DNA from: Ylistrum balloti
Taxonomy: Eukaryota
Direction: 5' to 3'
Length of the DNA: 64,000 bases
Assembly: GCF_031769215.1 (NCBI RefSeq)
Contig: NW_026782240.1
Span: 310,001-374,000 of the forward strand
Shown: positions 1-60,122 of the stretch, piece after piece
Layout of the letters: each line of letters begins with the position of its first letter
Numbering within the stretch: position 1 is the first letter of the stretch
Translations under genes and position numbers: made by a program
The notes under the pieces: model-generated
The model's database searches: none
What the model saw: only the letters and a program-made list of their open reading frames with translations
Told to the model about the DNA's origin: nothing

Positions 1-10973
<10,973 letters not shown>

Positions 10974-36710: not shown

Positions 36711-39700
36711 ATGATACTCCGTCGGGATAGTCCGGATACGGGAATGGGGTCCACTACCCATAGCTCATTTGGAGACTGTGACCAGTCAAGTTTGTCTCCG
36801 GACAAAATCATTGCTTTTACTAGGAGCCCGAGGAGACCTCCTGAATTCAAACCCCGGAGTCACTCACCTACCCGCCTTCCCGGGGGTCTTAGGGTATCAG
36901 TTTTACAGAAGCCTACTCCAAGGTTACGTCCACGAATTGAGGAGTCGCTGGCTGGTCTAGCCGAACTTAAAATGTTGAGAGAGAAACAGCTTCAGAGAAT
37001 ACAAGATGCCAAACTGACCACAAATGACCATGGTCAGCAACTCGATGTTCTGGTTAGTATTCTTTCCAACCCAGTATTTTCTATGGTGTGAAAAAAATGA
37101 CCATCACTATTGCATTTAGATAATTTAACATCATATAAAAAAATCAACGTAAGTAGAAAGTTGGATTTTATAGTTTGAATTTTTATACACAAGATAAGAT
37201 CTTATCGCATGTCTCCATTGCTTTTTAACTTCACGCATTTTTGTTCTTTAAAATTCATGAAATCCTGCAGCCGACTTTTAAAGACGTTTCATTATATATG
37301 ATACTATTCAACCCGATTGTATTATGAAAACAAGCACATTGATATCATTATGTAATTTGAGAAACTCACTGAGCACCGGACGTTTATTTTATTGACTAGT
37401 TAGAGAGATTAAATCAGAACAGATATACAACAATGCAGGCTTCGGAATTCATGTAACGTGTTCATTTCCATGTTTAAAACATATAGGGGAAATGAAAAAA
37501 GCGTGGAAACAGGTCATTTATAATTTATCTTAATATTTGATCTTTACACAATGAATAATATCAACAAAGTGTACCATTCGGAGACGAATGATTGTAAGAT
37601 TCTCTCATACCTAAACTATCAAATAACCTTTCCACTTGATAGAACAGACCTCCCTACTTTGTTAATTAGGCAACGTCATACCACAATTTAGACGCAATAT
37701 AAACCCAGAACCTTACAAAAAGTCTGGGAGGTAATGTAAAAGTTCAAACTGGAATACATTGCAGGGGATATTTAGATTTAACTGTACACGTAAATTACTT
37801 TTAGATTGATATCAAATAGATATCAGTATTTTTTTGCTGACTTTCCTCAGCTTGGAAATTAAGCTGTAATATCTGTATACTATCTAAACATATTGTTATA
37901 CGCTGAAAATATTCATACTTACGGATGCTTATCTCAATATGAGTAATGCTTTCTTTACAAAATGACTTTTATATTTAAGTCCCTGCTTTATATTAATTCA
38001 GGGATGTTATGAAGTTTACGTATAACTTAGTTATATGGAGTTTAAATGCTCAAAGAGAAAATATCGAGTTTACATAAACAATGTTCAATTGAATTAACAC
38101 ATATAAAATGTATATATATATATGTGTGTGTGTGTGATGAAATGCATCATAAAGTGACATTGTCAGGAGGATAAGATCAATCAAACTTTTCAAAACTCAA
38201 TTTCGAAAATCCATAGTTTTGTTAAAATCACTCCTTCGTAAAGTAGTGCAATATTTCTCCTTCAGTCACCTTTTCATCAGTGATACCTTCCTCTCTAGTC
38301 ACCGCTACATCAGTGATACCTTCCTCTCTAGTCATCTCTACATCAGTGATACCTTCCTCTCTAGTCATCTCTACATCAGTGATACCTTCCTCTCTAGTCA
38401 TCACTACATCAGTGATACCTTCCTCTCTAGTCATCACTACATCAGTGATACCTTCCTCTCTAGTCATCACTACATCAGTGATACCTTCCTCTCTAGTCAT
38501 CTCTACATCAGTGATATCTTCCTCTCTAGTCATCACTACATCAGTGATATCTTCCTCTCTCATCTCTACATCAGTGATCCTCTCTAGTCATCACTCCGCT
38601 CTCTACATCAGTGATACCTTCCTCTCTAGTCATCTCTACATCAGTGATACCTTCCTCTCTAGTCATCACTACATCAGTGATACCTTCCTCTCTATTCATC
38701 ACTACATCAGTGATACCTTCCTCTCTAGTCATCTCTACATCAGTGATACCTTCCTCTCTAGTCATCACTACATCAGTGATACCTTCCTCTCTAGTCATCT
38801 CTACATCAGTGATACCTTCCTCTCTAGTCATCTCTACATCAGTGATACCTTCCTCTCTAGTCATCTCTACATCAGTGATACCTTCCTCTCTAGTCATCAC
38901 TACATCAGTGATACCTTCCTCTCTAGTCATCACTACATCAGTGATATCTTCCTCTCTAGTCATCACTACATCAGTGATATCTTCCTCTCTAGTCATCTCT
39001 ACATCAGTGATACCTTCCTCTCTAGTCATCACTACATCAGTGATGCCTTCCTCTCTAGTCATCACTACATCAGTGATGCCTTCCTCTCTAGTCATCACTA
39101 CATCAGTGATATCTTCCTCTCTAGTCATCTCTACATCAGTGATACCTTCCTCTCTAGTCATCTCTACATCAGTGATACCTTCCTCTCTAGTCATCTCTAC
39201 ATCAGTGATACCTTCCTCTCTAGTCATCTCTACATCAGTGATACCTTGCTCTCTATTCATCACGACATCAGTGATACCTTCCTCTCTAGTCATCACTACA
39301 TCAGTGATACCTTCCTCTCTAGTCACCACTACATCAGTGATGCCTTCCTCTCTAGTCATCACTACATCATTGACACTCTAGTCATCTCTACATCAGTGAT
39401 ATCTTCCTCTCTAGTCATCACTACATCAGTGATATCTTCCTCTCTAGTCATCTCTACATCAGTGATACCTTCCTCTCTAGTCATCTCTACATCAGTGATA
39501 CCTTCCTCTCTAGTCATCTCTACATCAGTGATACCTTCCTCTCTAGTCACCACTACATCATTGACACTCTAGTCATCTCTACATCAGCGATACCTTCCCC
39601 TCTAGTCATCCCTATATCATTGACTCCCGCCCCTCCCTCCCACCCCCCCCCCCCACCCCCACCACCAATGCAGTCACTTGTCCCCTCTCCGACCCTTCCT

Positions 39701-42700
39701 CCTCCTAGGTAATCTTTTCAGCCATTACTTCAGCACCCACATACAATATGACAGTATGGGGATGTTATCATATCTATCACGTGGATGTTTTATCTTGGAT
39801 ATCGTATTTATAATAAGATAAGTGTTATTTATAACTCTTCTGATCCCAGTATTATTACTCAGCATTATTCATATTTAATGACTGATGGGTGTGTAATATA
39901 TTCCCCTCAGTAGTTTATGCATATTCTGCTCTGTTTTTTTGCCCATTTTATTTTAACATTATTTCTATCCTTTAGATTGTCATAGCTTTGGACGAAAACG
40001 GAATGAAGTAAACGGAAGCAATGTTATTAGCATACAGTGTAATATAAAGAAAACAATACTCTTGTATATCGAGGTTGTAACTCTCGTTCATCTCATTAAG
40101 GTTGTGACTCTACTCCATCTCGTTAAGTCTGTGACTCTACTCCATCTCGTTAAGGCTGTGACTCTTCTTCATCTCGTTAAGTCTGTGACTCTTCTTCATC
40201 TCGTTAAGGTTGTGACTCTCGTTCATCTCGTTAAGGTTGTGACTCTCGTTCATCTCGTTAAGTCTGTGACTCTACTCTATCTCGTTAAGTCTGTGACTCT
40301 CGTTCATCTCGTTAAGGCTGTGACTCTTCTTCATCTCGTTAAGACTTTGACTCTACTTCATCTCGCTAAGGTTGTGACTCTTCTTCATCTCGTTAAGACT
40401 TTGACTCTCCCTCATCTCCTTAAGGTTGTAACTCTCGTTCATCTCGTTAAGGCTGTGACTCTCGTTCATCTCGTTAAGGCTGTGACTCTCGTTCATCTCG
40501 TTAAGTCTGTGACTCTCCCTCATCTCATTAAGGTTGTGACTCTCGTTCATCTCGTTAAGGCTGTGACTCTCGTTCATCTCGTTAAGGCTGTGACTCTCGT
40601 TCATCTCATTAAGTCTGTGACTCTCCCTCATCTCATTAAGGTTGTGACTCTCGTTCATCTCGTTAAGGCTGTGACTCTCGTTCATCTCGTTAAGTCTGTG
40701 ACTCTCCCTCATCTCGTTAAGGTTGTGACTCTACTCCATCTCGTTAAGTCTGTGACTCTCGTTCATCTCATTAAGGTTGTGACTCTCGTTCATCTCGTTA
40801 AGACTTTGACTCTCGTTCAACTCGTTAAGGTTGTGACTCTCGTTGATCTCGTTAAGTCTGTGACTCTACTTCATCTCGTTAAGTCTGTGACTCTACTCCA
40901 TCTCGTTAAGGCTGTGACTCTCGTTCATCTCGTTAAGGCTGTGACTCTCCCTCATCTCGTTAAGACTTTGACTCTCGTTCATCTCGTCAAGACTTTGACT
41001 CTCGTTCATATCGTTAAGTCTGTGACTCCCGTTCATCTCGTTAAGGCTGTGACTCTACTTCATCTCGTTAAGTCTGTGACTCTCCCTCATCTCATTAAGG
41101 TTGTGACTCTCGTTCATCTCGTTAAGACTGTGACTCTCGTTCATCTCGTTAAGTCTGTGACTCTCCCTCATCTCATTAAGGTTGTGACTCTACTTCATCT
41201 CGTTAAGTCTGTGACTCTACTCCATCTCGTTAAGTCTGTGACTCTCGTTCATCTCGTGAAGACTTTGACTCTCGTTCATCTCGTTAAGTCTGTGACTCTC
41301 CCTTATCTCATTAAGGTTGTGACTCTCGTTGATCTCGTTAAGTCTGTGACTCTACTTCATCTCGTTAAGTCCGTGACTCTACTTCATCTCGTTCAGTCTG
41401 TGACTCCCGTTCATCTCGTTAAGGCTGTGACTCTACTTCATCTCGTTAAGTCTGTGACTCTCGTTCATCTCGTGAAGACTTTGACTCTCGTTCATCTCGT
41501 TAAGGCTGTGACTCTCGTTCATTTCGTTTAGGCTGTGACTCTCGTTCATCTCGTTAAGTCTGTGACCCTCCCTTATCTCATTAAGGTTGTGACTCTCGTT
41601 GATCTCGTTAAGTCTGTGACTCTACTTCATCTCGTTAAGTCCGTGACTCTACTTCATCTCGTTAAGTTTGTGACTCTACTTCATCTCGTTAAGGCTGTGA
41701 CTCTCCCTCATCTCGTTAAGACTTTGACTCTCGTTCATCTCGTTAAGACTTTGACTCTCCTTCATCTCGTTAAGTCTGTGACTCTCCTTCATCTCGTTAA
41801 GTCTGTGACTCCCGTTCATCTCGTTAAGGCTGTGACTCTCCCTCATCTCGTTAAGACTTTGACTCTCGTTCATCTCGTTAAGACTTTGACTCTCGTTCAT
41901 CTCGTTAAGGCTGTGACTCTCGTTCATCTCGTTAAGTCTGTGACTCTCCCTCATCTCATTAAGGTTGTGACTCTACTCCATCTCGTTAAGTCTGTGACTC
42001 TACTCCATCTCGTTAAGTCTGTGACTCTCGTTCATCTCGTGAAGACTTTGACTCTCGTTCATCTCGTTAAGTCTGTGACTCTCCCTGATCTCGTTAAGTC
42101 TGTGACTCTACTTCATCTCGTTAAGTCTGTGACTCTACTCCATCTCGTTAAGGCTGTGACTCTCGTTCATCTCGTTAAGACTTTGACTCTCCTTCATCTC
42201 GTTCAGTCTGTGACTGCCGTTCATCTCGTTAAGGCTGTGACTCTACTTCATCTCGTTAAGTCTGTGACTCTCGTTCATCTCGTGAAGACTTTGACTCTCG
42301 TTCATCTCGTTAAGGCTGTGACTCTCGTTCATCTCGTTTAGGCTGTGACTCTCGTTCATCTCGTTAAGTCTGTGACTCTCCCTTATCTCATTAAGGTTGT
42401 GACTCTCGTTGATCTCGTTAAGTCTGTGACTCTACTTCATCTCGTTAAGGCTGTGACTCTACTTCATCTCGTTAAGTCCGTGACTCTACTTCATCTCGTT
42501 AAGTTTGTGACTCTACTTCATCTCGTTAAGTTTGTGACTCTACTTCATCTCGTTAAGACTTTGACTCTTCTTCATCTCGTTAAGACTTTGACTCTACTTC
42601 ATCTCGTTAAGACTGTGACTCCCGTTCATCTCGTTAAGGCTGTGATTCTACTTCATCTCGTTAAGTCTGTGACTCTACTTCATCTCGTTAAGTCTGTGAC

Positions 42701-45700
42701 TCTACTTCATCTCGTTAAGGCTGTGACTCTCCCTCATCTCGTGAAGACTTTGACTCTCGTTCATCTCGTCAAGACTTTGACTCTCCTTCATCTCGTTAAG
42801 TCTGTGACTCCCGTTCATCTCGTTAAGGCTGTGACTCTACTTCATCTCGTTAAGTCTGTGACTCTCCCTCATCTCATTAAGGTTGTGACTCTACTTCATC
42901 TCGTTAAGTCTGTGACTCTACTCCATCTCGTTAAGTCTGTGACTCTACTCCATCTCGTTAAGTCTGTGACTCTCGTTCATCTCGTGAAGACTTTGACTCT
43001 CGTTCATCTCGTTAAGTCTGTGACTCTCCCTTATCTCATTAAGGTTGTGACTCTCGTTGATCTCATTAAGTCTGTGACTCTACTTCATCTCGTTAAGTCT
43101 GTGACTCTACTCCATCTCGTTAAGGCTGTGACTCTCGTTCATCTCGTTAAGACTTTGACTCTCCTTCATCTCGTTCAGTCTGTGACTGCCGTTCATCTCG
43201 TTAAGGCTGTGACTCTACTTCATCTCGTTAAGTCTGTGACTCTCGTTCATCTCGTGAAGACTTTGACTCTCGTTCATCTCGTTAAGGCTGTGACTCTCGT
43301 TCATCTCGTTTAGGCTGTGACTCTCGTTCATCTCGTTAAGTCTGTGACTCTCCCTTATCTCATTAAGGTTGTGACTCTCGTTGATCTCGTTAAGTCTGTG
43401 ACTCTACTTCATCTCGTTAAGGCTGTGACTCTACTTCATCTCGTTAAGTCCGTGACTCTACTTCATCTCGTTAAGTTTGTGACTCTACTTCATCTCGTTA
43501 AGGCTGTGACTCTCCCTCATCTCGTTAAGACTTTGACTCTCGTTCATCTCGTTAAGACTTTGACTCTCCTTCATCTCGTTAAGTCTGTGACTCCCGTTCA
43601 TCTCGTTAAGGCTGTGACTCTACTTCATCTCGTTAAGGCTGTGATTCTCGGTCCATATAAATGCTGATCGACGGTTATATTTGACTTATATTAAATAATC
43701 CAGGACGGTTATATACTATTTGTCAACATTACACAGGACTGACATTGACACCCTATTAATTGTAGGTATAAACTAGATCATACACGTTTCATAGCAGGTA
43801 ATGAATTATACATTCACGTGGCATGGAGTCCGAATGTTTTATCAGACTTCTGATAAAAATTCAACGTCCAGAATTTGATTAAACCGTGTCTATAACCAGT
43901 GTCATCTTAAGATGTATCCACCTATCTACAGAAGATAATGACTGGGTTTAGAAATAGGCGGAGTATTAAATAGACGGTCATAAAACGGCAAACTCGATAA
44001 ATTGACGTATTGATGTAAAGCAATGTCTCACTGTGTAGATTTAATTAATGTCTCCCCGGGAAATCACACCAACAACTCATTGTATATTGCTATCACAGCT
44101 CTGTGCATTAGATTTTCTTATTAGGATTTCAATTCTAAGGTTGTATTTTAATTTGCGAATAGCATTTTTATTTCGTTAATGATATTTGTTTATGTTTTTC
44201 ATATTTATCGGGCCAGTCTATATTGTTCAACTATGTAATATTTTATTCATTAGGTTGTTATAGTGTATCTATCGGACAGACCTCGACAGTGTCTGTTTGT
44301 GAGCAGGACCAGGACAATAGATATTTGTCAACAAGACCATGGTATCGTCTAATTGGCATCAATGTTGTGATGTTATCTAGTTAGCATCATGGCTGTGACA
44401 TTTTATGATTGACATCAAGGCCGCGATATTGTCTAATAAGAATCAAGACCATGACATTGTCTTATTGGTAACAAGGTCATGACATTGTCTTATTGGTAAC
44501 AAGGTCATGACATTGTCTTATTGGTAACAAGGTCATGACATTGTCTTATTGGTAACAAGGTCATGGCATTGTCTTATTGGTAACAAGGCCATGACATTGT
44601 CTTATTGGTAACAAGACCATGACATTGTCTTATTGGTAACAAGGCCATGACATTGTCTTATTGGTAACAAGACCATGACATTGTCTTATTGGTAACAAGG
44701 TCATGACATTGTCTTATTGGTAACAAGGCCATGACATTGTCTTATTGGTAACAAGACCATGACATTGTCTTATTGGTAACAAGGCCATGACATTGTCTTA
44801 TTGGTAACAAGACCATGACATTGTCTTATTGGTAACAAGGCCATGACATTGTTTTATTGGTAACAAGGTCATGACATTGTCTTATTGGTAACAAGACCAT
44901 GACATTGTCCAATTGGCATTATGATCGTGATATTGTCTTACTAGAATCAAGGTCAGGGCAATGTTTATTTTTCAGTGGAGCATGGACAGTGCCTATTTGA
45001 TAGCTAAGCCAGTATCCATTTGTCATTGAGGCATCGCTTTTTTCATACATGACCTGGTCAATGTCTGTTCGATTTTTCTCAGCTATGCCACTGTCTGTGC
45101 AATATTTTTTGTCAACAAAGTGTGGGCAATTGATATTTGTCAGTTAGGCATGAACAATATTTTTCGTCAGCTAGCAAACCACTGTTTATTTGTCAGTTAA
45201 GCCAGGTCAATATCTATTTTTCATGAGCTAGGTCAGGCCACTGTGCATTTGTCCGCTGGACCAGGACAATGTCTATTTGTTAGCTAAGTCAGGCCAGGAT
45301 CTATTTGTTAGCTAGGTCAGGGCAGGATATATTTGTTAGCTAGGCCTGACCTAGGCAGTGTCTATTTATTGCGTAGCCCAGGCCAGTATCTATTTGTTAG
45401 CTAGGCCTGACCTAGGCAGTGTCTATTTATTGCGTAGCCCAGGCCAGTATCTATTTGTTAGCTAGACCTGACCTAGGCAGTGTCTATTTATTAAGTAGGC
45501 CAGGCCAGTATCTATTTGTTAGCTAGACCTGACCTAGGCATTTAAGTATTTACCAGATGGACAAAGCCACTGTCGGTCTGGGTAGCACCCGTCCATTTCT
45601 CAGTGATTGATACAGCTCTGTACGTTTGCATGACGTAAGATTGGACCAATAAGTCTTTCCTTTACCAGACGACTTGAATGTAGTCTTGTCTGTTTTCAAT

Positions 45701-48700
45701 AGTCAACTTTACACTTACACCTCACGAGCGTCGTGCGTGTGTTCCGTCATATGACAGATTTATAAAACAGCGTTTAAGCGGCAAACACGACCACGTGCTC
45801 TATATCATTAGTCACACTCAACTCAGCTCGACTGCTTCACTTTTTTTTATCTGTTTACCTGTCAACAACCGTAAATTTGCCGATTACCTGTACTTACCTG
45901 GACGATTGGAATGTTAAAAATGCAGGTCCAGGTCACATACTTTCATGAATGCTTTAGTGCATGTAATATGCAGAAAGCAGTTAAGTGCAATGTAGGAATT
46001 ACATGACCATAAAATCTCAATTGATTATGGCTGTAAACTTTGAGTCACTAACCATTACAAGATGTACACTGAAGACTATATAATTGATTGAACTCGTAAT
46101 TAATTCATTCATAGTACAAAACCGCCAGTAATATATTACATCATATTGAAGGAACATTATTTTCTAATTTAAAAGCTCCTTGGCTTTATGTTGCATGGAT
46201 CAATGTTAAAATCGAACAGACACTTTTTTCGGAATTATATTTGTATACCATGTCGATATTTTGTCTGTGAAATGTGAATACTAAGTAGAAATTTTGTCGT
46301 TACAGATATATATATATACCATGTCGACATTTTGTCTGTGTGAAATGTGAATACTGAGTAGACATTTTGTCGTTATGTCTATACCAAACAGACATTTTGT
46401 ACGGGTAAGATGTGTATACCGAGTAGACGTTATGTCTGGGTAAGATGTGTATACCATGTAGACGTTTTGTCTGGGTAAGATGTGTATACCGAGTAGACGT
46501 TTTGTCTGGGTAAGATGTCTATACCGAGTAGACGTTTTGTCAGGGTAAGATGTGTATACCATGTAGACATTTTGTCAGGGTAAGATGTGTATACCATGTA
46601 GACGTTTTGTCAAGGTAAGATGTGTATACAATGTAGACATTTTGTTTGGGTAAGATGTGTTTACCGAGTAGACGTTTTGTCTGGGTAAGATGTGTATACC
46701 ATGTAGACGTTTTGTCAGGGTAAGATGTCTATACCGATTAGACATTTTGTCTGGGTAAGATGTGTATACCATGTAGACGTTTTGTCAAGGTAAGATGTGT
46801 ATACCATGTAGACGTTTTGTCAAGGTAAGATGTGTATACAATGTAGACATTTTGTTTGGGTAAGATGTGTTTACCGAGTAGACGTTTTGTCTAGGTAAGA
46901 TGTGTATACAATGTAGACATTTTGTCAGGGTAAGATGTCTATACCGATTAGACATTTTGTCTGGGTAAGATGTGTATACCATGTAGACGTTTTGTCTGGG
47001 TAAGATGTGTATACCATATAGACATTTTGTCTGGGTAAGATGTGTATACCATGTAGACGTTTTGTCTGGGTAAGATGTGTATACCATGTAGACATTTTGC
47101 CAGGGTAAGATGTGTATATCATGTACACGTTTTGTCTGGGTAAGATGTATATACCGAGAAGACATTTTGTCTGGGCAAGATGTGTATACCTAGTAGACGT
47201 TTTGTCTGGGTAAGATGTGTATACCATGTAGACGTTTTGTCTGGTTAAGATGTGTATACCATGTACACGTTTTATCGCCTAAAGATGCACAAATCAAGTG
47301 TTGTGTAGTGTTGTGTAATGTAAGCTCTCTGTCATTTCTAACTCAACTTCACAGTGACAAACGCCTATGGTCACAATCAGCCGTAGACCTACAAGTAGAT
47401 TAGTTCTCAAATACACATTGAAAATCTTTGTGAATTACAAGATAAACTCTCTTTGAAGATATTTTTCTCGTATTTATTCCTCTTCCCGTTTCAATAAACC
47501 CTACAGTGAGTACACATTTTCCTTATTCTCCCAACCGGACTTTGGTTGTAATATAGCTATGTTATCTACTGGGATTTAGGCTATCAATCTGTTTACTAGT
47601 TACCACACAGCACGAGGTGCGGGAGTAAAATTCTCTCAAAATATATTCCCTATCCAAATGAAGTTTGCCTTGTGTCAACATCATTCAGTTGATATGTTTG
47701 TATATAACGGGTTGTCGACTTTGTTGAACTTGTCTGGGTATGTCTGGTTTGGGCCACTCCATATAAGTTCCATTTTCGAGACGCTCCGTCACCGGTGTTT
47801 ACCAAAATTGTTAAGAAATGTTTCACAAGCAATCAAAATAAAACAGAAAATGGAATGTCCATGCCTAAAACTTCAAATCAAACTTGGCAGCACCTTGTCT
47901 TAAACACAGTAATTTTACATCAATATCATTAGACATGACGACACCCTGTCTTAAACACAATATGTTTACATCAATATCATTAGACATGACGGCACACTGT
48001 CTTATACCTAGTAGTTTTACATCAATATCATTAGACATGACGACACCCTCTCTTATACCTAGTAGTTTTACATCAATATCATTAGACATGATGACACCCT
48101 GTCTTATACCCAGTAGTTTTACATCAATATCATTAGACATGACGGCACACTGTCTTATACCCAGTAGTTTTACATCAATATCATTAGACATGACGGCACA
48201 ATGTCTTATACCCAGTAATTTTACATCAATATCATTGTCTTATTCCCAGTGGTTTAACATTAATAAGGGAAATATTTTCTCATCAGGAACATATTTGTCC
48301 TCTGACAGCGACAGACTTTGATACCTTACCATAAGTCTTTATTATATATCATATTAGTTTGTGATATTGAATTTCTTACTGAAAACTACTTTGAACAAGT
48401 CATATTAAACAAAGTCATGTTTCAATTCAGTTACGTATTAATTTATCGTAAAAATAATTATCATTCTATGTCAATTTAACAAAAACTTTCTTTGTCGTGA
48501 AAGTGCATTGCCACAACCAATGAGATTAGTGAAGAACTGATGTCGATCATCATAGCCTTCCATTTGGGTGCCAATCCTACAGTGCTTCATTCATGTCTTT
48601 ATAAACCTGTTTTACAGACTATGTATTTACGAGACTCGATGTCCCTAGAGTATGATGACACACTAATGTGGATCAAAGTTACGCCTTATCACACGTTTCA

Positions 48701-51700
48701 CGCAGTCTATTCAATCTATTTTCATTTTATATTTCTAACAATTGATAATGATATATAAAGAAGCTTTTAATAAACATCCTTTGTTAATTTGAATTTGAAT
48801 TAATAGACTTGTTTTTTATTACCGTCTTTTCAAGTCTGTTCATGTTAAGGTCTTGCTTATGTATTGATAACATTGCCACCTGTGCTAGCGGGCCCACAAG
48901 AGTTTAGTCATAGCTGTCTAGCACATAGTCGGGAGCTTTTCAAAGTGCTCAACATTATCACTGTTGTATCATTATAGGGAAATAAAACTTTCTTTTAGGA
49001 AAATAAAATACGACTGTTACTTGCGAACAAACAGTGATGAAAGATGGGCGTCTTTTTCTGTTGGCGGAATAAACCCCCAAAAATAAAAAAAAAAAAAAAC
49101 AAAAAACCAAAAACAAACAAAAAACCCAATGTAATTCATACTCAAAGCTGGTGTATATATCTAAATTTAAACATCGTCTACACGCTGTTTGTCTGCCAGT
49201 ACAGAATTGTGATAAATATAGTAAATATTATTTGTGTTTAGATAAATGACCTGCAAAGGATAATACCCGTGTTTGATTAAAATGTGACACAGTTAAAGAA
49301 CCTTTTTTTCTTTTGACAAAATATTTACCTAATATACAGTTTAAGTAATGCAAACTTTGGTATATAATTAATGCATGTATTCAGATGTAACAAGTCCAGT
49401 TAAATGTCGTGCTTTCACCTCGGGGAATGGAAGAAATTGCCCGGCCAGGTAAAAACTGAATTGTAATTAAGCGACGATCTGGGAAATGCGATTAGGGATT
49501 GGCAGTGATCTTTAACTTATTACCTTTAAAATAATCAGCACCTTTATTTCAAACTTAACACCAATGGCGCTATAGGGCTTAATCTGGATTAACTCAGATG
49601 TAGCGAAATCATTTAAGTGTATCCTATCACGAAATGACGATAAGAAATCGATGTTATTTGACAGGTCAGTGGCACAAATAAGAGAGCCATATTCGACGAT
49701 GTTAAATTAATTTTGGTAGATATGACGTCGCTTCTGTGTGACGTTCGAGAGATATATTTATAATAATAGTGGTAAACAAATACATAAATAGGATATAATA
49801 GTATAGATAGAAATTGTCAAACCATGATAATATTCTTACTTTAATTCTACTCTTTGGCACATGAACCTGTTCGGAAGAAGAAATACTGGATCAGAAGTAG
49901 TTTTTAATACGGGAGTATTACGAAAACACCTCGAGAAACATACGTGGACACAGTGATTCAGCTGGTCTAAATGCTTTATTCGTGAGAAGTAAATATACTC
50001 TCCAATGTTTCGCTCTAGACAAAAGTAATCGATCAAGTTTGTTGTCACATATTTCACACAGCAGGATCCATCGTAATTACCCGGAATACCTCACCGTTCA
50101 ATCGTGATACTCGAGATTCTACATATTGTTAGCTGTCGAAGATATAAAGCATCTTCAATTATTTTATGTGGAGATCTTTAGCACTATGGAAGAAGTTTAA
50201 CTTTCAGTCTTACAAAACACATAGCCAGAGAAAGTTACCAAGGAATAACTATTTCCAAACGCGCTAACCGAAATAAGGCATTCACCCATTGTGTTAGCTA
50301 TGGTTATTCGTCAATGACTATTAGCAGGGTTTTACTATAAGCTAACAATACAGAGATTGTACATGGGTATGACGCCATGTCCACTACGCGTGGAAATGAC
50401 CACTGGCAGATTTAAAGATGTGACACCTTACCCAGATAAGTCTTCTTTTATATAAAGGGCTCTTTGGAGACCTTGGAATACCATTGTTTCCCTTCGGTTC
50501 ACCGACTTAGCCTCGGTTTGATACGAAGATAACAATAGGTTAAGGACGAAGAAAAAAAATTGGAACTGTTTTTTTGTGTCGTTATGGTGTTACTAGTTAC
50601 ATGAAAACGTTTCCTGATGTTTTCCTTTTTTTGCGTTCATACCTTGCCAGTGAACTGCTTTTAAGTCATTTATAGTCGATATGAAGGACATTGCAAGTAA
50701 ACATATTGCATGATAAATAGCCTGTTTTTATTATAGTGTTGCGTGAATTTTATTAACTGACATTTACATGCCAATACTTGTTGGTATTGATTTAGTTGGA
50801 TTTGAGGAATATATTAATTAATTAACTATTATGTGGAACAACCATTTTAACTCGTGTACTGTCAACGTTATCAAGGCATTATATATGACATTTAGAAAAT
50901 TATAGGGAACTTATAATTATAAATAAGAACTGTTGTCATTATACAGTTGTAAATAATAGAGAACTGATATCGTTATACCATTGTAAATAATAGAGAACTG
51001 GTATCGTTATACAATTGTAAATAATAGAGAACTAATATCGTTATACCATTGTAAATAATAGAGAACTGGTATTGTTATACAATTGTAAATAATAGAGAAC
51101 TGGTATTCCTATACAATTGTAAATAATAGAGAACTGTTATTCCTATACAATTGTAAATAATAGAGAACTGATATCGTTATACAGTTGTAAATAATAGAGA
51201 ACTGGTATCGTTATACAATTGTAAATAATAGAGAACTGGTATTGTTATACAATTGTAAATAATAGAGAACTGGTATCGTTATACAATTGTAAATAATAGA
51301 GAACTAATATCGTTATACCATTGTAAATAATAGAGAACTGGTATTGTTATACAATTGTAAATAATAGAGAACTGGTATCGTTATACAATTGTAAATAATA
51401 GAGAACTGGTATTCCTATACAATTGTAAATAATAGAGAACTGGTATTCCTATACAATTGTAAATAATAGAGAACTGGTATTGTTATACAATTGTAAATAA
51501 TAGAGAACTAATATCGTTATACCATTGTAAATAATAGAGAACTGGTATTGTTATACAATTGTAAATAATAGAGAACTGGTATCGTTATACAATTGTAAAT
51601 AATAGAGAACTGGTATTCCTATACAATTGTAAATAATAGAGAACTGGTATTCCTATACAATTGTAAATAATAGAGAACTGGTATTGTTATACAATTGTAA

Positions 51701-54700
51701 ATAATAGAGAACTGGTATTCCTATACAATTGTAAATAATAGAGAACTGGTATTCCTATACAATTGTAAATAATAGAGAACTGGTATCGTTATACAGTTGT
51801 AAATAATAGAGAACTGGTATCGTTATACAATTGTAAATAATAGAGAACTGGTATTGTTATACAATTGTAAATAATACAGAACTGGTATCGTTATACAATT
51901 GTAAATAATACAGAACTAATATCGTTATACAATTGTAAATAATAGAGAACTGGTATCGTTATACAATTGTAAATAATGCGAAACTGTTATCATTATACAA
52001 TTGTAAATAATAGAGAACTGGTATTCCTATACAATTGTAAATAATAGAGAACTGGTATTCATATACAATTGTAAATAATAGAGAACTGGTATTCCTATAC
52101 AATTGTAAATAATAGAGAACTGGTATTGTTATACAATTGTAATTAATAGAGAACTAATATCGTTATACAATTGTAAATAATAGATAACTAATATCGTTAT
52201 ACAATTGTAAATAATAGAGAACTGATATCGTTATACAATTGTAAATAATAGAGAACTGGTATTCCTATACAATTGTAAATAATAGAGAACTGGTATTGTT
52301 ATACAATTGTAATTAATAGAGAACTAATATCGTTATACAATTGTAAATAATATAGAACTGATATCGTTATACAATTGTAAATAATAGAGAACTGGTATTC
52401 CTATACAATTGTAAATAATAGAGAACTGATATCGTTATACAATTGTAAATAATAGAGAACTAATATCGTTATACAATTGTAAATAATAGAGAACTGGTAT
52501 TCCTATACAATTGTAAATAATAGAGAACTAATATCGTTATACAATTGTAAATAATAGAGAACTGGTATTCCTATACAATTGTAATTAATAGATAACTAAT
52601 ATCGTTACACAATTGTAAATAATAGAGAACTGATATCGTTATACAATTGTAAATAATAGAGAACTGGTATTCCTATACAATTGTAAATAATAGAGAACTG
52701 GTATTCCTATACAATTGTAATTAATAGATAACTAATATCGTTACACAATTGTAAATAATAGAGAACTGATATCGTTATACAATTGCTAACTCATCTCTTC
52801 GATTATTTGGGCGAGCTTGACAAAAGTAAAATAACAGGAAGTGACGTCATTGTCTACTGACGATGAACCCACAAGGTGAGGTGTACATCGCTCCTCGTTT
52901 CTCGTGTCATTAGGTAGTATTTACTTATTACATTCCGTTGAGGTGATATTTTCAGCCCATTTAGTTTTTTTTTTAAAGCTCATAACGTTTAACATGTACG
53001 CAGAAAAGTCACGTAAACATGTATAAATGTATACAAACATGTTATTAAAGCACTTGACTGGTGGCCCTTTAAAGAAATATACAATTTTTTACATGTTGTC
53101 TTTATTTGCTTTCTTTCAACTTTTAATTTGCTTATTTATTCGTTATTCGAATAAATATTTGAGTTTCAGCCAATGCCCTTGCTAAGGGCCGATAGCAAGG
53201 GAGAGTTAGGTATGATTAGCAGATAAAAAAAAAATCTTGGAAGCCATCTTTGACGGATTAATACAATGAACATGACGGACGTACACGAATTATTTTTTTA
53301 TAAGATATAGCCTACAGTGAGTAACACTGTAAACTTATATCATACAATTTGTGAAATGGCTCGAGAACAGCACGTCTCTTGTGAACTGCGGTAATCTAGA
53401 CTCTACAACCCCTTATACCCGCTTCCGACTTTTTTTCTGTCAACAATGAAAGGCGATGGGATAGAAATCTGAGTAAACAGGAGTTCGCTTTTGTCCTTCT
53501 CTTTGCCGAATGTCGCCCTCCACCAAGAAAAAATATATGTTTGACACATAGGTATACATACGGGAGTGAAAGACGGTTTAATTAATAGTTACCTGCCTAC
53601 CAGTACGTTTTACGTAAATCAAAAACGAAATCAAAGTCATTATCGCCTGGTATTAAATATTTAAGTGGAGGGATACGAAGTACGAAACACTAAGGTTACC
53701 AAAACACTTAGCGCCTTCTCTGTTAAGCTGGCCGTATCTACTCTACCAGACAGAATGAGAATGGTTTTGTAACTGATTAACGTTCTTAAATCTAGCAATA
53801 TTACTCAAAATAAAACTTCTTCTCTTTCTTTTTGTTGAATCTTTCCAAGGAATGTTTTAATTGCACATAGAAATATTGCAAATGTTTGCATATCATATCC
53901 AAAATGGTCGGAAAAACAGAATTCTGAAATGCAGCAAGATCTTGTATGCCTTAAATAGCACAGCTTCTTAATTACGACAATGACACCGACAATGGTCAAT
54001 GGTCAATGGATACAGAAATGATTAGAAACAGAAAGAACCCGAGATATCTTACATCAAAATAGGATAGGAATGAATATTTCTGATTGATCTCTTAGTATGT
54101 CTTTACAATGCCGACAAATATTCTGTATTTTCGAAATAAAATATTGGTTCAACTGAAAAATCGTATCAGAGAAAGCAAATATCACGCCACAATCAATCAT
54201 ATGAAATGCTCTTTTAATCGACTGTTACAAATCATGTCCTAAACTGAATGCCTGCTCAAGGACATTTGATTCAGGGAGTGTTTTCTCTTCAGTTCAAAAA
54301 GACTGTTCTAAGGGTAGTTATCATACATAGATGTTCCGTCGCATACGCACATGTTTGAATCGGTATTACCTTGTTTATTGGGGGTATAAACGTGCTTACA
54401 TATAACTGGTTCACTTAAGCAACGCTGGAATTTCTTTCTGAATTACGTAACATCTTAAAGGTTTTTCATGAGTAGATAATTAATGGCAAGGTTCCAACAT
54501 ATCTATTCAAAGTGTCAATATAAAATCCACATTTCCATTTGAATGAGTTCCAGACACTTTCGAACAAAACAAATAAAAAAAAATGTTCTCAGATAAAAGT
54601 TGATAATTCTAAATTTAGTTTACATTGATCAGTCTTGCAGTATTTCTTTTGATATATTGCATGTCGTTCTCGGGTACACATACTTAAATACATAACTTAA

Positions 54701-57700
54701 ACAATGTCATCAACAATCATAATATCTTAAATGTATTAAACAAATAATGATATGAATGGAATTTGTCAAAAATATCTATATTCTTTTGTTCAGTTTCGCA
54801 AATTGACATGCAATGATAGCAATAGGTTACTGTGTAAATACACTTCTGTACATGTGTATGGGTTACTGTGTAAATATACTACTGTTCTGTACATGTGTAT
54901 AGGTTACTGTGTAAATACACTACTTTACTGTACATGTGTATAGGTTACTGTGTAAATACACTACTGTACTGACATGTGTATAGGTTACTGTGTAAATACA
55001 CTACTGTACATGTGTATAGGTTACTGTGTAAATACACTACTGTACTGACATGTGTATAGGTTACTGTGTAAATACACTACTGTACATGTGTATAGGTTAC
55101 TGTGTAAATACACTACTGTACTGTACATGTGTATAGGTAGCTGTGTAAATACACTACTGTACATGTGTATAGATTACTGTGTAAATACACTACTGTACAT
55201 GTGTATAGATTACTGTGTAAATACACTACTGTACATGTGTATAGATTACTGTGTAAATACACTACTGTACATGTGTATAGATTACTGTGTAAATACACTA
55301 CTGTACATGTGTATAGATTACTGTGTAAATACACTACTGTACATGTGTATAGATTACTGTGTAAATACACTACTGTATATGTGTATAGATTACTGTGTAA
55401 ATACACTACTGTATATGTGTATAGATTACTGTGTAAATACACTACTGTACATGTGTATAGATTACTGTGTAAATACACTACTGTACATGTGTATAGATTA
55501 CTGTGTAAATACACTACTGTATATATGTATAGATTACTGTGTAAATACACTACTGTACATGTGTATAGATTACTGTGTAAATATCACTGTAGCAGTACAT
55601 TACTATTGTGAATGTTATACGTCACTTGTAATCTTATCTATTTATGGGTAAAATTTTCGCGGTTTAACCGGAAGCTTGATGCAAAATGGATGCACTTAGA
55701 CGGAAGTCAGATAATAGACTTTTGTTTTCTTTAACATATACCGTTTTGTGACGTCATCGCCAGTTACAACTTTTGCGACGTCTGGGCGAAGTTAAGGTCC
55801 ACATCATGGTCGTCGTTATCCTTTTTGACACTAACTCCGATCCTCACCAAACTCATAGCCTGTAAATCATCTGTTGAGTCTACCAATTATTCACTTACAT
55901 TTGAAGTGCGTTTAGTGGCACATAGGTAACATGGAAATATCAGAGGTTTTATAAAAACTTACGATAACAATTCATTAGCATCCGAACAGATAAAAAATAT
56001 TTTTAAAAATGCATGTACTCCAATATATATTTGTAATAATGTCATGACGTAACCTTATAAAGACAGATGAGTTCACTTTTATGCTAAATACGTGAACGTG
56101 TCGTATCAAGCAACCTAAAGTTATGAACTACAAACCGTGAGCTTTATTGGTAGTCCGACAGCTATATTAACAACAAAATAAAATAAATATAAGTATATTG
56201 TACCTTCACGTGCTTTTTCTGTAACCTTGTAAATTAACTGTTTTTTTTTCTTTCCAGCATGTTAAAGACAAAGAGCTGAGTCTACTATGGCATTCGCCTG
56301 GCAACCTTTCTAGTATATCTGAAGAGGAAGTTCCCGTTAACCGGAACAATATTAAACCCGAAACTGAAAATAAAGGTATTTATCTAAATGGAACAGAGGA
56401 CGGATCGTCTCTTAGTCGCAACAGTTATGCGAGCAATAACAGTCTTGACTCGCTTGATAGTGACGTAAGTTCTGACGAACAAAAGGCGGAGAAATCGTTA
56501 AGTGATGACGGAGTTGGACGCAAATTGTCTTCCTTCAAAGGCTATCAATCCGTTAATTTACAAATGACGTATCCAGATCCTCGATATCTCGGTCAAAGAC
56601 GGGCAAGCACGCAGTGTATTCCGCAGTCTAATCTGACCGGTCATGTCTTGTCTGACAAAAAAGTCTACCAACGCCAAAGAAGAGCGAGTTTTCAATGCGA
56701 GGCCGTGTTGACAAAGTCTCGAAACGAGGACACCAGTTCTAAAATCATATCAGATATGAAACTAAATTATAACTCTCCTGGTCCCCTTCACGCAGTCATG
56801 AGACAGTATGGCAGCTCTTCAAATCTTTCACATAAATCAACTCCTAGTTTGTCATCAACATCTTTAAACATTGGAAAATTAGAGGCGAAAAATCCTATGG
56901 ACGTTTTACGTGATTGGGAACTCGAAAAAACTAAAGATGCTGAAAACACCAAAACAGCTGCCTCTTCACAACAAGTGTCGACACAAAACAAAGCGCAAAT
57001 CGTGAGCAATAGTGTGTGTCAAGAAAAAATGATGCCAAGAAGTGATAAAGGTATTAAATCAAACATGGTTGATGAAGCTGAAAAAGAAAATAACAATGAA
57101 AATAAGGTTTGTTCATCGTCAGAATCAGAAGATAGAATTAAAGCAAACGCTGTGGACAATGGGGCGGAAGAAAAACAGAGACCAAAGGTTACCAAATACC
57201 TAAATACAGATAAAGACAAAGAAAAGGCAAACGTTATCAATCGTAGAACAAATATTTCCACGGAACTGTCAGTTTCTACATCAAACTTCGACCACATACG
57301 CGAGCAAAGCTTTACGTCAGACTATTACGGGTCTATCGAGACCATTCATTCCGTCCAGTCACTTCCTGTCTCACGGGTACCGTCTTCTAATTACAAACAA
57401 AGCACTAGTTCTGCGGGATCTACCTTCAAGGACCAATTCGTGTCCAGTAACAGACGTCATAGCCTTCCGTGTAACAGTTCCAAAAACTTTTTGTCTACGC
57501 CATCGAGAACGCGAAGCCAAGTGCATAATCTACCAAATGGGGTTACGGCTCCAGATTTCGCGAGGAAACCAAACAGTACACGTGCGCTAAAAGTACCAAA
57601 TTCTTCATTAGATACCAACCTCCGCGCTTCATCTGGAAATCTTTCCTGCGGCGATGATGACGTGTTTGACAACACAAAAACTACGACAACTTTCGATGTT

Positions 57701-58126
57701 CAACGCCAGCAGACAACAGCTGTTAGTGCGGATGTGTCCGGGGAAGAAACAATCAATGTGCTCAAAGAGTCCATATCTAGAAAATGTAAACCAAACTTTC
57801 ATCAAACCACTGAACAGGTATGGAACCTGTCTGCACCACCGCCACATTGTTCTAACAAACGTGTTCCAGATAACAGTGGTTTACAAAATACGCAAACGTA
57901 CGTTACCAAAGCGACAGCGGATGAAGGATATGTTGCTTCAGTGTCGTCGAGAGAAAATTCGTACGAGGATTTGATAGGAGGTGAAATCATACGAGAAACT
58001 GGAAAGTTGACGGATGTTAATGGGAAAACGAATTCAGACATTGTAGAGATACCAGGAAAAAATGATAAAGATTCTAAAGACACAAAAAAGGTTGTGACGA
58101 AGACTTTTCTAGAAACGACGCTCTAA
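36711..58126 (+). CDS. Dapper/DACT-like scaffold protein, 736 aa. Coding exons 36711-37052 and 56258-58126, separated by a 19.2-kb intron
   Basis: In-frame stop just upstream of ATG 36711; donor CTG|GTTAGT at 37052; acceptor (T)10CTTTCCAG|CAT at 56258; phase-0 join; 623-codon terminal exon. N-terminal RLRPRIEESLAGLAELKMLREKQLQRIQDA matches recalled DACT3 RLRGWLEGSLAGLCELHWLRERQEYRVQQA; C-terminus LETTL* (DACT: L/VMTTV). The two exons are secure; their joining and the family name are inferred. Confidence 0.78.
38275..39621. repeat. Minisatellite, 33-bp unit (catcagtgataccttcctctctagtcatcacta), about 40 copies
   Basis: Direct periodicity; source of the MTREEGITDVE, SVIPSSLVIST and SDTFLSSHLYI ORFs. 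Confidence 0.98.
40073..43650. repeat. Minisatellite, 27-bp unit (aaggctgtgactctcgttcatctcgtt), about 132 copies, with higher-order blocks
   Basis: Direct periodicity; source of the VKAVTLVHL ORFs. A rare TAG variant recurs at 41531, 42341 and 43313. Confidence 0.98.
44444..44909. repeat. Minisatellite, 28-bp unit (tcatgacattgtcttattggtaacaagg), about 17 copies, within a longer degenerate array (about 44270-45540)
   Basis: Direct periodicity with decayed related units on both sides. Confidence 0.96.
45330..45540. repeat. 61-bp tandem repeat, about 3.5 copies (tatttgttagctaggcctgacctaggcagtgtctatttattgcgtagcccaggccagtatc)
   Basis: Unit starts at 45330, 45391, 45452 and 45513. Confidence 0.92.
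46243..47273. repeat. Minisatellite, 35-bp unit (gtagacgttttgtctgggtaagatgtgtataccat), about 29 copies
   Basis: Direct periodicity. Confidence 0.97.
47888..48236. repeat. Minisatellite, 51-bp unit (catcaatatcattagacatgacggcacactgtcttatacccagtagtttta), about 7 copies
   Basis: Direct periodicity; gives a 17-aa repeat in both strand ORFs. Confidence 0.96.
50900..52785. repeat. Minisatellite, 34-bp unit (ttatacaattgtaaataatagagaactggtatcg), about 55 copies
   Basis: Direct periodicity. Confidence 0.98.
54822..55583. repeat. Minisatellite, 36-bp unit (gtatagattactgtgtaaatacactactgtacatgt), about 21 copies
   Basis: Direct periodicity; source of the YRLLCKYTTVHV ORFs. Confidence 0.97.
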
Positions 58127-60122
58127 ATATTTTAACAATGAATAATTTTTTTCTGGATTTGACAGCTATCCCTTCAGTTTTTTTTAATACCATACAAACT
58201 GTTGTTCCCGTGAGTAATAAACATCAGTGAAGTGTATTATTTAGCCAGAAACCGTGGATTAGCATTATAAATATTACACGTGTGTTTACGAACAATGCAT
58301 TTACATTGTCGAGATTTCCACATGTTTTGTTGCTTTTGTTTGTGTTTCACCATTATTTCATGTAATTAAAACACCAGACCTGCTTCGTGTGGACAACTGC
58401 GCTGCAAAAGAAACATACTGCATTCGCTCATTCTTTCACAAGTTGCAATCTGCTTTGATATAGTTTATAGTTTGAAATTGAATTGTAAACTCTAACATAA
58501 TGTCGTTAACTTCAGATAAGATATTTTCACGTGGTAAGATGTACTGCTGATCATTCACATGTCTCACTGACCCGTCAGCGAAGTGATTAATTCTATTTGT
58601 CCTGTGAATTTTCCAAGGTCGCTAAACGAGGTTGTAGAGCAAGTTCAAAATAAAAGCGAAGCTTCGACTGCTTTTCTGTGTTCTGTATTTTGTATGTTGT
58701 TTTTGCTGTTGTTTTATTTTTGTTTTTTTTGTTTTTTGTTTTTGTTTTCGTTTTTTTTTTTTTTTTTTTTTTGGGGGGGGGGGGGGAGGGGGGAGTCGAT
58801 TTTATTTCGAGGACGCATTCTGCTATAGAAAGTTAGAACGTGTCTGATTTGTTTGCGATGAAAGTGGTTTACAACTGGACCTGGTTTTTAGGATATATCG
58901 GAATTAATCGACAAGCAACTTTAGGCTGAACAAATATCATTTTCATTCCTTGACTTCGGATATTTATGTTTGTAAAGAAGTGATAATTACTTAATGTTCT
59001 TTTTTTAATTTAATCATTTCTCATTGTTATTCACCAGCCTTTATATTCGTATCAGCCTTTCCCCCTCTATTTCTAACACGTTAACTGATCGGCAGGTCTG
59101 CTGTATATTGGTATCATTGGTTATTAAGCTAGGTGGTGATGTTATCAAGTCAGAAAATATAACATTTTCATATCATGTAAATCAAAACAACAATTAACAT
59201 AAAGATTAAAATATCATTCATTGTTGCTTTGATATGTATAGTATATAATGAAACTATAATATATCTCAGAATAATGCAGTCCTAGACAAGTCTGTAATAC
59301 ATATCGCTGTACATATTGACTCACGTGATTTATCTACCAGAGACACACTCATCTATATACGCCTACGTTACCGAACATAGTTCAATTTACAAAATCTTCA
59401 GCAAACACGCACAGATAATGATGACCTTATTTAAACTGTTAACAACTACTATCATTTAGACGTTTTCTTACACAGTGATCGGACAGGTAAAACATGGGTC
59501 GTGAGTTCTGCTCTGCAGTGCATCGATAAGTCACACAAGTCAGATGTTTCGCTATCTATACAGTCTTTCTGGTATCAGTAAGAATAATATGAAGGGTACA
59601 AGAGATTTTATAGTTTATCTGGAAGTTACACGAGATTTCAGGATAAATTTGAAGGTTACACGTTTTTATAAAAAAATTGAAGGCATTTCAATTGCGCACG
59701 AGACATTTGGAAGTTGCACGAGATTTCGTTGTCATTTGAAGGTTGCATGCGATATTATGATACGTTTCAAGTTTTACATTGTATGTATAGATACACGTTT
59801 ATGTTTATTGTGTGACATGTGTACATATATATCTAATATTTTAGAATAGTTGAATTCGAGTTTGACATAATCATATCGATGCTGACAGCAATATTACCTT
59901 TCGTGCCAGCCCCCAAATGGATACAAAATAGCATTTTATATTTCGTCTATAAAATACTTCATTAGAATTAGTAAAAAGACCTAAACATCTTCCGTTACAA
60001 TGTTTTTTTATTATCATTTATTTATTTTTCTTATTTTTTGTGCCGCCATTTTGCCCTCATATATATTAGGAGTGTCTATATCAACATGCAATATACCCCC
60101 ACAACAGCGGTGCCAATCACAT

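Follow-up and report, generated by a model that had tools for sequence, protein, structure and literature searches.

A mollusc-wide family of disordered proteins with collinear Dact motifs, seen from a scallop gene

A two-exon gene for a long disordered protein

The window, a 64,000-nucleotide stretch of contig NW_026782240.1, carries between positions 36,711 and 58,126 of its forward strand a two-exon gene for a long, mostly disordered protein. The host, which the letters had suggested to be non-chordate and mollusc-like, is indeed a mollusc and not a chordate: Ylistrum balloti, of the Pectinidae. The gene and the conserved blocks along its product are as follows.

36711..37052, + strand: coding exon 1 (aa 1-114), 114 codons from the annotated ATG at 36711
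36801..36911, + strand: mollusc-conserved N-terminal block (aa 31-67), ..IIxFTRxPxxPPxxKPRS...LPGGLRV.., with a short predicted helix at aa 30-38
36918..37016, + strand: Dact motif 1 (aa 70-102), RLRPRIEESLAGLAELKMLREKQ..., core of a predicted helix at aa 73-105; Pfam Dapper positions 2-27
37053..56257, + strand: single intron of 19,205 bp, GT...AG, phase 0
56258..58126, + strand: coding exon 2 (aa 115-736 and stop), 622 codons plus stop, Ser/Thr-rich, with disorder predicted for nearly its whole length
56303..56329, + strand: SLSSISEE block, with L131, I134 and E136 invariant within the family
56594..56716, + strand: two basophilic-kinase consensus sites, QRRASTQC (aa 227-234) and RRASFQCEAVLTK (aa 255-267), both conserved
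56741..56824, + strand: Dact motif 4b (aa 276-303), IISDMKLNYNSPGPLHAVMRQ..., found with the mollusc HMM and hhalign; [FY]PSPLHAV elsewhere in the family
57299..57376, + strand: bivalve-conserved block REQSFTSDYYGSIETIHSVQSLP (aa 462-487), with no significant chordate counterpart
57449..57472, + strand: near-invariant RRHSLP (aa 513-518), with P518 in at least 90% of family members
57917..57973, + strand: conserved acidic D-E-G-Y block (aa 668-686)
58100..58126, + strand: C-terminal tail KTFLETTL and stop, class I PDZ-ligand consensus, with T734 invariant in the family

Exon 1, whose translation contains ...KIIAFTRSP...RLRPRIEESLAGLAELKMLREKQLQRIQDA...GQQLDVL, is followed directly by a GT donor (GTTAGT), and an AG acceptor, TTTTCTTTCCAG, lies directly 5' of exon 2. 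Joined in phase 0, as the original prediction had it, they give a 736-aa protein (14.1% serine, 7.7% threonine) that ends ...KKVVTKTFLETTL* and matches in every residue the entry that NCBI names "uncharacterized protein LOC132553479" (Ylistrum balloti). Other bivalves conserve a start at the MGS... methionine of aa 12 (36744); the annotated ATG lies at 36711. A 1.87-kb open frame in DNA of 33-40% GC, with scallop orthologues in two other species at 57-62% identity to the Ylistrum protein, is far beyond chance. The intron is long and repeat-rich, with tandem-repeat arrays making up more than 9 kb of it, as might be expected if exons of different genes had been joined or coding exons within it had been missed. 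We consider such an annotation artefact very improbable, since the splice sites are canonical and in phase, the NCBI model makes the identical join, and the flanking residues are unchanged in Mizuhopecten orthologues and in two transcript-like contigs, all of which run straight on across the junction. An uninterrupted 683-codon open reading frame covers that junction in L001, a Logan contig of 2506 nt that comes from a relative; both exons are therefore part of a single transcript, not of different ones, and nothing is spliced in between. Hidden middle exons were considered and rejected: the open reading frames of the intron are translations of tandem repeats, and because orthologues and cDNA-like contigs are collinear over the junction none is needed.

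We regard the gene model as demonstrated, and equally the predicted disorder, with 604 of the 736 residues below pLDDT 50 in the AF2 model and a confident helix at aa 73-105 (pLDDT 85-95). RRHSLP fits R-x-x-S-x-P, the phospho-dependent 14-3-3 consensus, and is on that ground a putative 14-3-3 site.

Dact motifs in a mollusc-wide family

An exhaustive profile search of 1.84 billion representatives returned 40 matches at E<=1e-3 with the same conserved blocks. Every named relative comes from a bivalve or a gastropod, and none is annotated as Dact; the family, mollusc-wide and not named before, has this gene as its scallop member, and its conservation we take as demonstrated. Pfam scans do not support "CUPID domain-containing" and "LIM domain-containing protein A-like", the names under which an Elysia marginata and a Gigantopelta relative are recorded.

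The original prediction assigned the gene to Dact from motifs (EATLAGLAELEYLRQRQ, GSLAGLCEL and L/V-MTTV) that all match those listed by Schubert et al. 2014 (Additional file 9), and proposed the Pfam Dapper model as a check. That check came out in part. Dapper (PF15268) is the sole Pfam match of the exon-1 piece (E 0.006, 15.9 bits, profile positions 2-27) and the top match of the N-terminal fragments of 10/10 members (profile positions 1-41, E 7.8e-6 to 0.011), with no non-Dact family coming out ahead of it. These fragments score between 15 and 25.5 bits, the best being P0031 at 25.5, and none of the family members tested reaches the gathering cut-off of 27 bits. A weak precomputed Dapper match was already on record for P0039. 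It had also been anticipated that whole-protein searches would miss the relationship, and they do: full-length Pfam scans of 11 + 10 family members, P0001 included, gave no Dapper match, the match is lost in the fragment P0001:60-310, and mid-length fragments lose it in 3/10 cases. Searches outward from the mollusc proteins likewise stayed among molluscs. No chordate Dact was retrieved with the mollusc profile in the exhaustive search at E<=1e-3, nor any Dact in a word-seeded search with aa 40-115 at E<=10, and a profile word-search for chordate Dact sequences also gave molluscs only. Look-alikes in the ESM Atlas, for the whole protein and for aa 31-115, were generic disordered proteins with scores <0.9 and no Dapper among them, and a PDB sequence search with exon 1 gave designed helices only, at E about 1.

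Such results could also be read as those of a mollusc-specific disordered protein whose likeness to Dact is chance or a convergence of short linear motifs, namely an amphipathic Leu/Arg/Glu helix, a proline-rich motif and a common PDZ tail. The Pfam matches are all sub-threshold and fragile, the exhaustive and word-seeded searches bring back no Dact, just two of the tested Dact motif groups match, and class I PDZ tails are common; moreover the gene was picked in a very large scan, so its N-terminal match carries selection bias. But Dapper is the single consistent match of the N-terminal fragments among 24,736 Pfam models, and the comparison can be run from the chordate side, where motif sequences and consensuses from Schubert et al. 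2014 (Additional file 9) stood in for full natural sequences. When 47 chordate peptides were compared without bias with the mollusc profile, motifs 1 and 4b alone stood out. They follow each other as they do in chordates, motif 1 first, and in bivalves 182-207 aa separate them. All 9 chordate variants of motif 1 match positions 56-85 of the mollusc HMM, which 0/1000 shuffles do, and hhalign aligns the motif at 96.4% (P 1.1e-9), the best of 100 column-shuffled controls giving 21.6%. At 23-25 residues, with 14/23 identical to the Dact1 consensus and scores of 32.4 bits for that consensus and 29.3 bits for the natural lamprey dactB, the motif 1 match is too long for a typical linear motif. Motif 4b peptides of Dact2, Dact3 and Dact4 score 10.5-15.7 bits at HMM positions 256-276 (0/1000 shuffles), and hhalign gives 92.8% with P 3.9e-7, the best control reaching 4.2%; this second motif, at P about 4e-7, had no part in picking the gene. 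The collinear Dact motif homology we therefore hold to be demonstrated. Convergence seems to us improbable, and we are rather confident that the gene is a real, highly divergent Dact homologue.

Motif 4b (PSPLHAV) had gone unused in the original prediction. The window's own copy reads SPGPLHAV, and PLHAV fragments alone give no Dapper match against Pfam, the motif being too short for HMMER's filters.

Kept and missing features of chordate Dacts

Like vertebrate Dact1 and Dact3 (Dapper/Frodo; PF15268), the mollusc proteins have motif 1 in exon 1, R-x-R-x-R-[LI]-E-x-[ST]-L-A-G-L-x-E-L-x-x-L-R-x-[KR]-Q, ahead of a central motif 4b, Y-x-[YF]-P-S-P-L-H-A-V-x-x-Q, which has [LI]-[VI]-S upstream at a Dact4-like spacing. 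They are also long, Ser-rich and disordered, are encoded mostly by one large last exon and end in a T-x-aliphatic tail of PDZ-ligand pattern. Unlike them, they lack the leucine zipper (motifs 2a-c), for which peptides compared with the mollusc profile gave nothing above shuffles; within the aa 70-106 helix three or more leucines never fall into one heptad register, and the helix stops at aa 105. The RPSSGFY motif, which the original prediction had reported missing, has no match above shuffles either, and the same holds for motifs 2d/2e (DSRPSS-GFYELSD) as a whole and for motifs 2f, 4a, 5 and 7-10, so that the nuclear localisation motifs 8a-c are missing as well. There is no match to 5b/5c of the central Dishevelled-binding region of vertebrate Dacts. 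Motifs 11a-f are all absent, the Vangl-binding/Ser-rich 11d-f peptides SDSEYSAEC, FGDSESS and LIWSQF doing no better than shuffles; the basic stretch before the tail (motif 11g) has no match, and the KIKASHxLKKK stretch that precedes the vertebrate tail is lacking. A D-[DE]-G-Y acidic/Ser block in the mollusc proteins resembles the Vangl-binding region, by eye only. The mollusc gene has two coding exons against four in vertebrate Dacts and three in amphioxus, and LPGGLRVP, RRASFQCEAVLT, SFTSDYYGS and RRHSLP are specific to molluscs in this comparison. Synteny with the vertebrate loci was looked for as well: of the gene's neighbours in the window, Schubert et al. 2014 name not one at any Dact locus.

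Accepted members of the family also lack some of these motifs. The Dact of this kind that has diverged furthest, Branchiostoma floridae dact (Schubert et al. 2014), is without most vertebrate motifs and resembles the mollusc proteins in having motif 1 with a degenerate motif 4b (YPYSPMHAI), in having fewer exons (three), and in a printed C-terminus, ...HLVTEL, that fits the mollusc T-x-L pattern; it differs in that motifs 2b-e, 5 and 8b, along with the leucine zipper, are retained. The mollusc motifs 1 and 4b come nearer to those of vertebrate Dacts than the amphioxus motifs do, with vertebrate and lamprey peptides at 20-32 and 10-16 bits and amphioxus at 14.4 and 0.9. Vertebrate Dact4 is an accepted member that keeps motifs 1 and 4b without the leucine zipper and other motifs, and it shares with bivalves the exact [LI][VI]S-to-PSPLHAV spacing, though it differs from the mollusc proteins in having lost the PDZ-binding tail. 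Some Dact3 are also without the leucine zipper (Schubert et al. 2014).

The C-terminal tail and the age of the Dact family

A T-x-[L/V] C-terminus, the pattern of a class I PDZ ligand, closes 31/32 long members. The mollusc tails (LETTL, LETAL and RQTAV, against KLMTTV in vertebrates) share the consensus [E/Q]-T-x-[L/V], which differs from MTTV at residues -3 and -1. The generic class I PDZ optimum is E-[ST]-x-[VL], and the PDZ domain of Dishevelled is atypical. The mollusc tail fits a generic class I consensus and not the MTTV of Dact1-3; the Dishevelled PDZ domain would be a candidate partner, by analogy with vertebrate Dacts.

On balance we favour the view that the family consists of divergent Dact/Dapper homologues acting as disordered PDZ-docking scaffolds that modulate Wnt/planar-polarity signalling. 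The conserved elements of the 736-aa scaffold are, from N to C terminus, the amphipathic helix of exon 1 (motif 1), the RRxS kinase-consensus sites, [FY]P-x-PLHAV (motif 4b) and the [E/Q]-T-x-[L/V] tail. The analogy of vertebrate Dact1-3 makes it most likely that the free tail binds a PDZ domain, that of Dishevelled being first among the candidates. Recruitment or oligomerisation of partners would fall to the helix and the central motifs; phosphorylation would adjust the interaction, and the protein would in this way modulate Wnt/planar-polarity signalling. PDZ and Dishevelled binding, and any signalling role, are proposed here from that analogy.

Another model accepts the Dact homology, with the tail serving other PDZ proteins (e.g. 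Dlg/Scribble-type class I) or the function unrelated to Dishevelled; the Dact-Dishevelled link would then be a chordate or vertebrate acquisition. It is consistent with E or Q at -3 in place of the Met of K-L/V-MTTV, with the closeness of the tail to the generic optimum rather than to an atypical PDZ domain, and with the lack of a match to 5b/5c, the second, central Dishevelled-binding region; Schubert et al. 2014, moreover, left undecided when Dishevelled binding arose. We nonetheless think it unlikely, if well worth keeping in mind, as it is precisely in T at -2 and an aliphatic last residue that the tail agrees with MTTV, it does not vary across the bivalve-gastropod split, as expected with a conserved partner, and no PDZ partner of the family other than Dishevelled is known.

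Wnt/beta-catenin, planar-polarity and TGF-beta signalling meet at the Dact proteins, which the literature regards as a level of control that arose late and is confined to chordates. Schubert et al. 2014 looked for Dact in Aplysia and further protostomes without success, a 2025 study of Dact1 still calls it chordate-specific and builds its rationale on that specificity, and we found no published report of a non-chordate Dact. A mollusc-wide homologue would date the family to the ancestor of Bilateria, and the "chordate-specific" Dact family probably predates the protostome-deuterostome split. Of the Dact-Dishevelled module that the original prediction placed in that ancestor, the Dact half is supported by the collinear motif homology and the Dishevelled half we infer. 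We lean slightly towards a fuller scenario in which Dact is no chordate invention, persists in molluscs, and has either vanished from flies, nematodes and tunicates or changed there past recognition. In that scenario the PDZ-binding tail is ancestral, and the VTEL of amphioxus dact is a retained variant, beside the MTTV, MTMV or MTLV of Dact1-3 (Schubert et al. 2014, Additional file 9). If it is true, the picture of Dact-driven Dishevelled regulation as a chordate-specific add-on to planar polarity needs revising.

The evolutionary core of Dact would be motif 1, motif 4b and the tail, with neither motif 1 nor motif 4b having an established mechanism. For spiralian developmental biology the family offers a new candidate regulator of Dishevelled, and its recovery from a short N-terminal piece is a case of how disordered scaffolds evade whole-protein homology searches.

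The two-exon gene and its mollusc family

The gene under study is read from two exons on the forward strand, in a window with an N count of 0:

36711-37052 (+), 114 stop-free codons from an ATG, translated as ...DKIIAFTRSPRRPPEFKPRS...RLRPRIEESLAGLAELKMLREKQLQRIQDAKL...GQQLDVL, with GTTAGT directly 3'
56258-58126 (+), 622 codons and a stop, with TTTTCTTTCCAG directly 5' and the C-terminal end ...KKVVTKTFLETTL

Joined in phase 0, they encode 736 aa identical letter for letter to the NCBI entry "uncharacterized protein LOC132553479 [Ylistrum balloti]", which makes the host a scallop (Mollusca, Bivalvia, Pectinidae) and not a chordate. The original prediction of a two-exon, phase-0 gene in a mollusc-like genome thus stands, and the junction is also read through in orthologues of Mizuhopecten and two other bivalves (QPLDIL|HLRDKG, HPSDTL|HMKDKD), one of which comes from a cDNA-like record, a 2506-nt contig with an uninterrupted 683-codon ORF. 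The start codon is uncertain: annotation places it at the first ATG, 36711 (MILRRDSPDTG...), and other bivalve orthologues start at or align from an MGS/MGT methionine corresponding to Ylistrum residue 12 (36744).

An exhaustive search of 1.84 billion representative proteins with a profile of 11 bivalve sequences gave 40 matches at E<=1e-3. Every match with a named source is a mollusc, either bivalve (Mizuhopecten, Pecten, Mytilus, Pinctada, Saccostrea, Sinanodonta) or gastropod (Elysia, Plakobranchus, Lymnaea, Haliotis, Gigantopelta, Lottia), and none of these is annotated as Dact. Two carry the names "CUPID domain-containing" (P0033, Elysia marginata) and "LIM domain-containing protein A-like" (P0025, Gigantopelta aegis); no Pfam match at E<=1 supports either name, and both seem to be spurious labels put on a disordered protein. 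The family alignment consists of conserved islands within variable Ser-rich sequence.

Conserved islands of the family alignment
1: ...RSRSLxxLPGxLRVPxL...
2: RLEAxxAGLxELxxLRExQ
3: SLxSIxEE
4: RRASxQCExVLT
5: [FY]PxPLHAVxxQY
6: RRxSLP, with SFTSDYYGS in bivalves
7: D[DE]GY
8: C-terminus [E/Q]-T-x-[L/V]

Resemblance to chordate Dact proteins

The sole Pfam match of the exon-1 piece is Dapper (PF15268; profile positions 2-27, E 0.006, 15.9 bits). Dapper is also the top match, over profile positions 1-41, for N-terminal 81-aa fragments of all ten members tested, bivalves and gastropods among them (E 7.8e-6 to 0.011, 15.1-25.5 bits), though none of these matches reaches the 27-bit gathering cut-off; one of the ten also has a weak precomputed Dapper match on record. 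The match disappears in some longer fragments, Pfam scans of full-length family proteins give no Dapper match, and the protein is not formally a member of Pfam Dapper.

The 47 motif peptides that Schubert et al. (2014, Additional file 9) print for Dact1-4, lamprey dactA-D and amphioxus dact were scored against an HMM built from 19 mollusc proteins, with 1000 shuffled versions of each as control, so that the chordate side consists of printed motif peptides and not of natural full-length Dacts. Only motif 1, the N-terminal helix motif, and motif 4b, the central PSPLHAV motif, score above shuffles (maxima 10.2 and 1.3 bits, respectively).

Chordate motif peptides against the mollusc HMM (bits; shuffles scoring as high)
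Motif 1 (HMM 56-85), Dact1: 32.4; 0/1000
Motif 1, lamprey dactB: 29.3; 0/1000
Motif 1, Dact3: 23.9; 0/1000
Motif 1, Dact2: 22.7; 0/1000
Motif 1, lamprey dactC/D: 20.7; 0/1000
Motif 1, Dact4: 15.9; 0/1000
Motif 1, amphioxus: 14.4; 0/1000
Motif 4b (HMM 256-276), Dact4: 15.7; 0/1000
Motif 4b, Dact2: 11.4; 0/1000
Motif 4b, Dact3: 10.5; 0/1000

Alignment of chordate motif alignments to the mollusc alignment with hhalign gave a probability of 96.4% for motif 1 (P 1.1e-9, aa 71-93; best of 100 column-shuffled controls 21.6%) and 92.8% for motif 4b (P 3.9e-7, aa 284-297; best control 4.2%). Taken alone, the Ylistrum protein matches the Dact1 consensus of motif 1 at 14/23 residues (Smith-Waterman 69, shuffle maximum 46), and its motif 4b is significant against Dact4 and Dact3 (0/3000) and marginal against Dact2 (34/3000). 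Motif 4b follows motif 1, the order also found in chordates, at a distance of 182-207 aa in bivalves; it had no role in the original choice of this gene and is therefore an independent test. In heterobranch gastropods (P0031-P0034, P0038; ~1000-1120 aa) the spacing is 394-482 aa, with ~200 added residues between the motifs.

No above-shuffle match to the mollusc HMM was found for the leucine zipper (motifs 2a-c), DSRPSS-GFYELSD (2d/e), whose absence had been remarked from the outset, or motifs 2f, 4a, 5a-c, 7-10 and 11a-f and the pre-tail basic run. Protein-language-model look-alikes were uninformative as to Dact.

Could the resemblance be due to chance or convergence? A 23-25-residue match, an independent motif 4b (P ~4e-7) and an invariant PDZ-type tail would have to arise together, in the correct order, and be kept across the bivalve-gastropod split. 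Homology with Dact is favoured for these reasons and is, in our judgement, very probable. The Dact interpretation is thus supported, and the Ylistrum protein is most aptly called a divergent Dact-like branch that lacks the zipper. Dact was judged to be chordate-specific by Schubert et al. (2014), whose searches covered Aplysia, insects, nematodes, a sea urchin and Saccoglossus, and a 2025 paper still uses that term for Dact1. Full-text searches of the literature outside subscription journals turned up no account of a Dact in a protostome; "Dapper" in bivalve papers is an author surname. Our results support a new divergent member of the Dact family in a phylum thought to lack it.

The C-terminal tail and possible function

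A T-x-[L/V] C-terminus is present in 31 of the 32 long family members, as LETTL, LETSL, LETAL, RQTAV, KQTAV or RQTEV. The C-terminus is [RKQ]QTAV in the heterobranch members (P0031-P0034, P0038) and FRQTEV, FRQTSL or FKQTSL in Haliotis and two further contigs. Dact1-3 end in MTTV, MTMV or MTLV (Schubert et al. 2014). Amphioxus dact is said there to have no PDZ-binding motif, yet the C-terminal residues given for it (...SCHLVTEL; Additional file 9, motif 11g) fit class I T-x-L, as do the mollusc tails. Judging from these sequences, the PDZ-type tail may be ancestral rather than a vertebrate gain.

AlphaFold2, run with the family alignment, predicts a disordered protein (pLDDT <50 at 604/736 residues) with one stable helix at aa 73-105 (pLDDT 85-95); the C-terminal end is free and of class I PDZ-ligand type. 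Short helices are placed at 30-38, 275-283, 290-298 and 327-339, and no heptad register of the stable helix holds three leucines. Conserved kinase-consensus sites are two RRAS and one RRHSLP, the latter fitting R-x-x-S-x-P. By analogy with vertebrate Dacts, the tail would probably dock into the Dishevelled PDZ domain, the helix and PLHAV region would bind or cluster partners, and phosphorylation, possibly with 14-3-3, would regulate docking or clustering, so that Wnt and planar-polarity signalling would be tuned overall. The tail could instead bind a different class I PDZ protein: its -3 residue is E/Q where MTTV has Met, and nothing recognisable in the mollusc protein corresponds to the second, central Dishevelled-binding region of vertebrate Dacts.

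Neighbouring genes and repeats

Three other genes lie in the window:

3200-10650 (~3.2-10.6 kb) (+), leucine-rich-repeat gene, originally read as LRRC40
~16.0-22.6 kb (-), MCLC/CLCC1-like chloride-channel protein gene
26752-26958 (+), UQCRH hinge-protein exon (Pfam UCR_hinge, E 2e-19)

Their human orthologues and RPA2 are all on chromosome 1p, a shared placement that is a possible linkage-group hint. RPA2 adjoins amphioxus dact, and none of the three neighbours is named at vertebrate Dact loci in Schubert et al. (2014).

Tandem arrays fill >9 kb of the 19.2-kb intron (37053-56257):

38264-39623, 33 bp x 42
40076-43649, 27 bp x 132
44416-44969
46315-47273, 35 bp x 27
47891-48236
50922-52785, 34 bp x 55
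54822-55588, 36 bp x 21

Long spurious ORFs arise from these arrays on either strand, and extra coding exons within the intron were rejected, its ORFs being tandem-repeat translations only. Tandem-repeat tracts outside the gene, at 2230-3080 and 60000-60900, likewise contain repetitive ORFs, on one strand or both.
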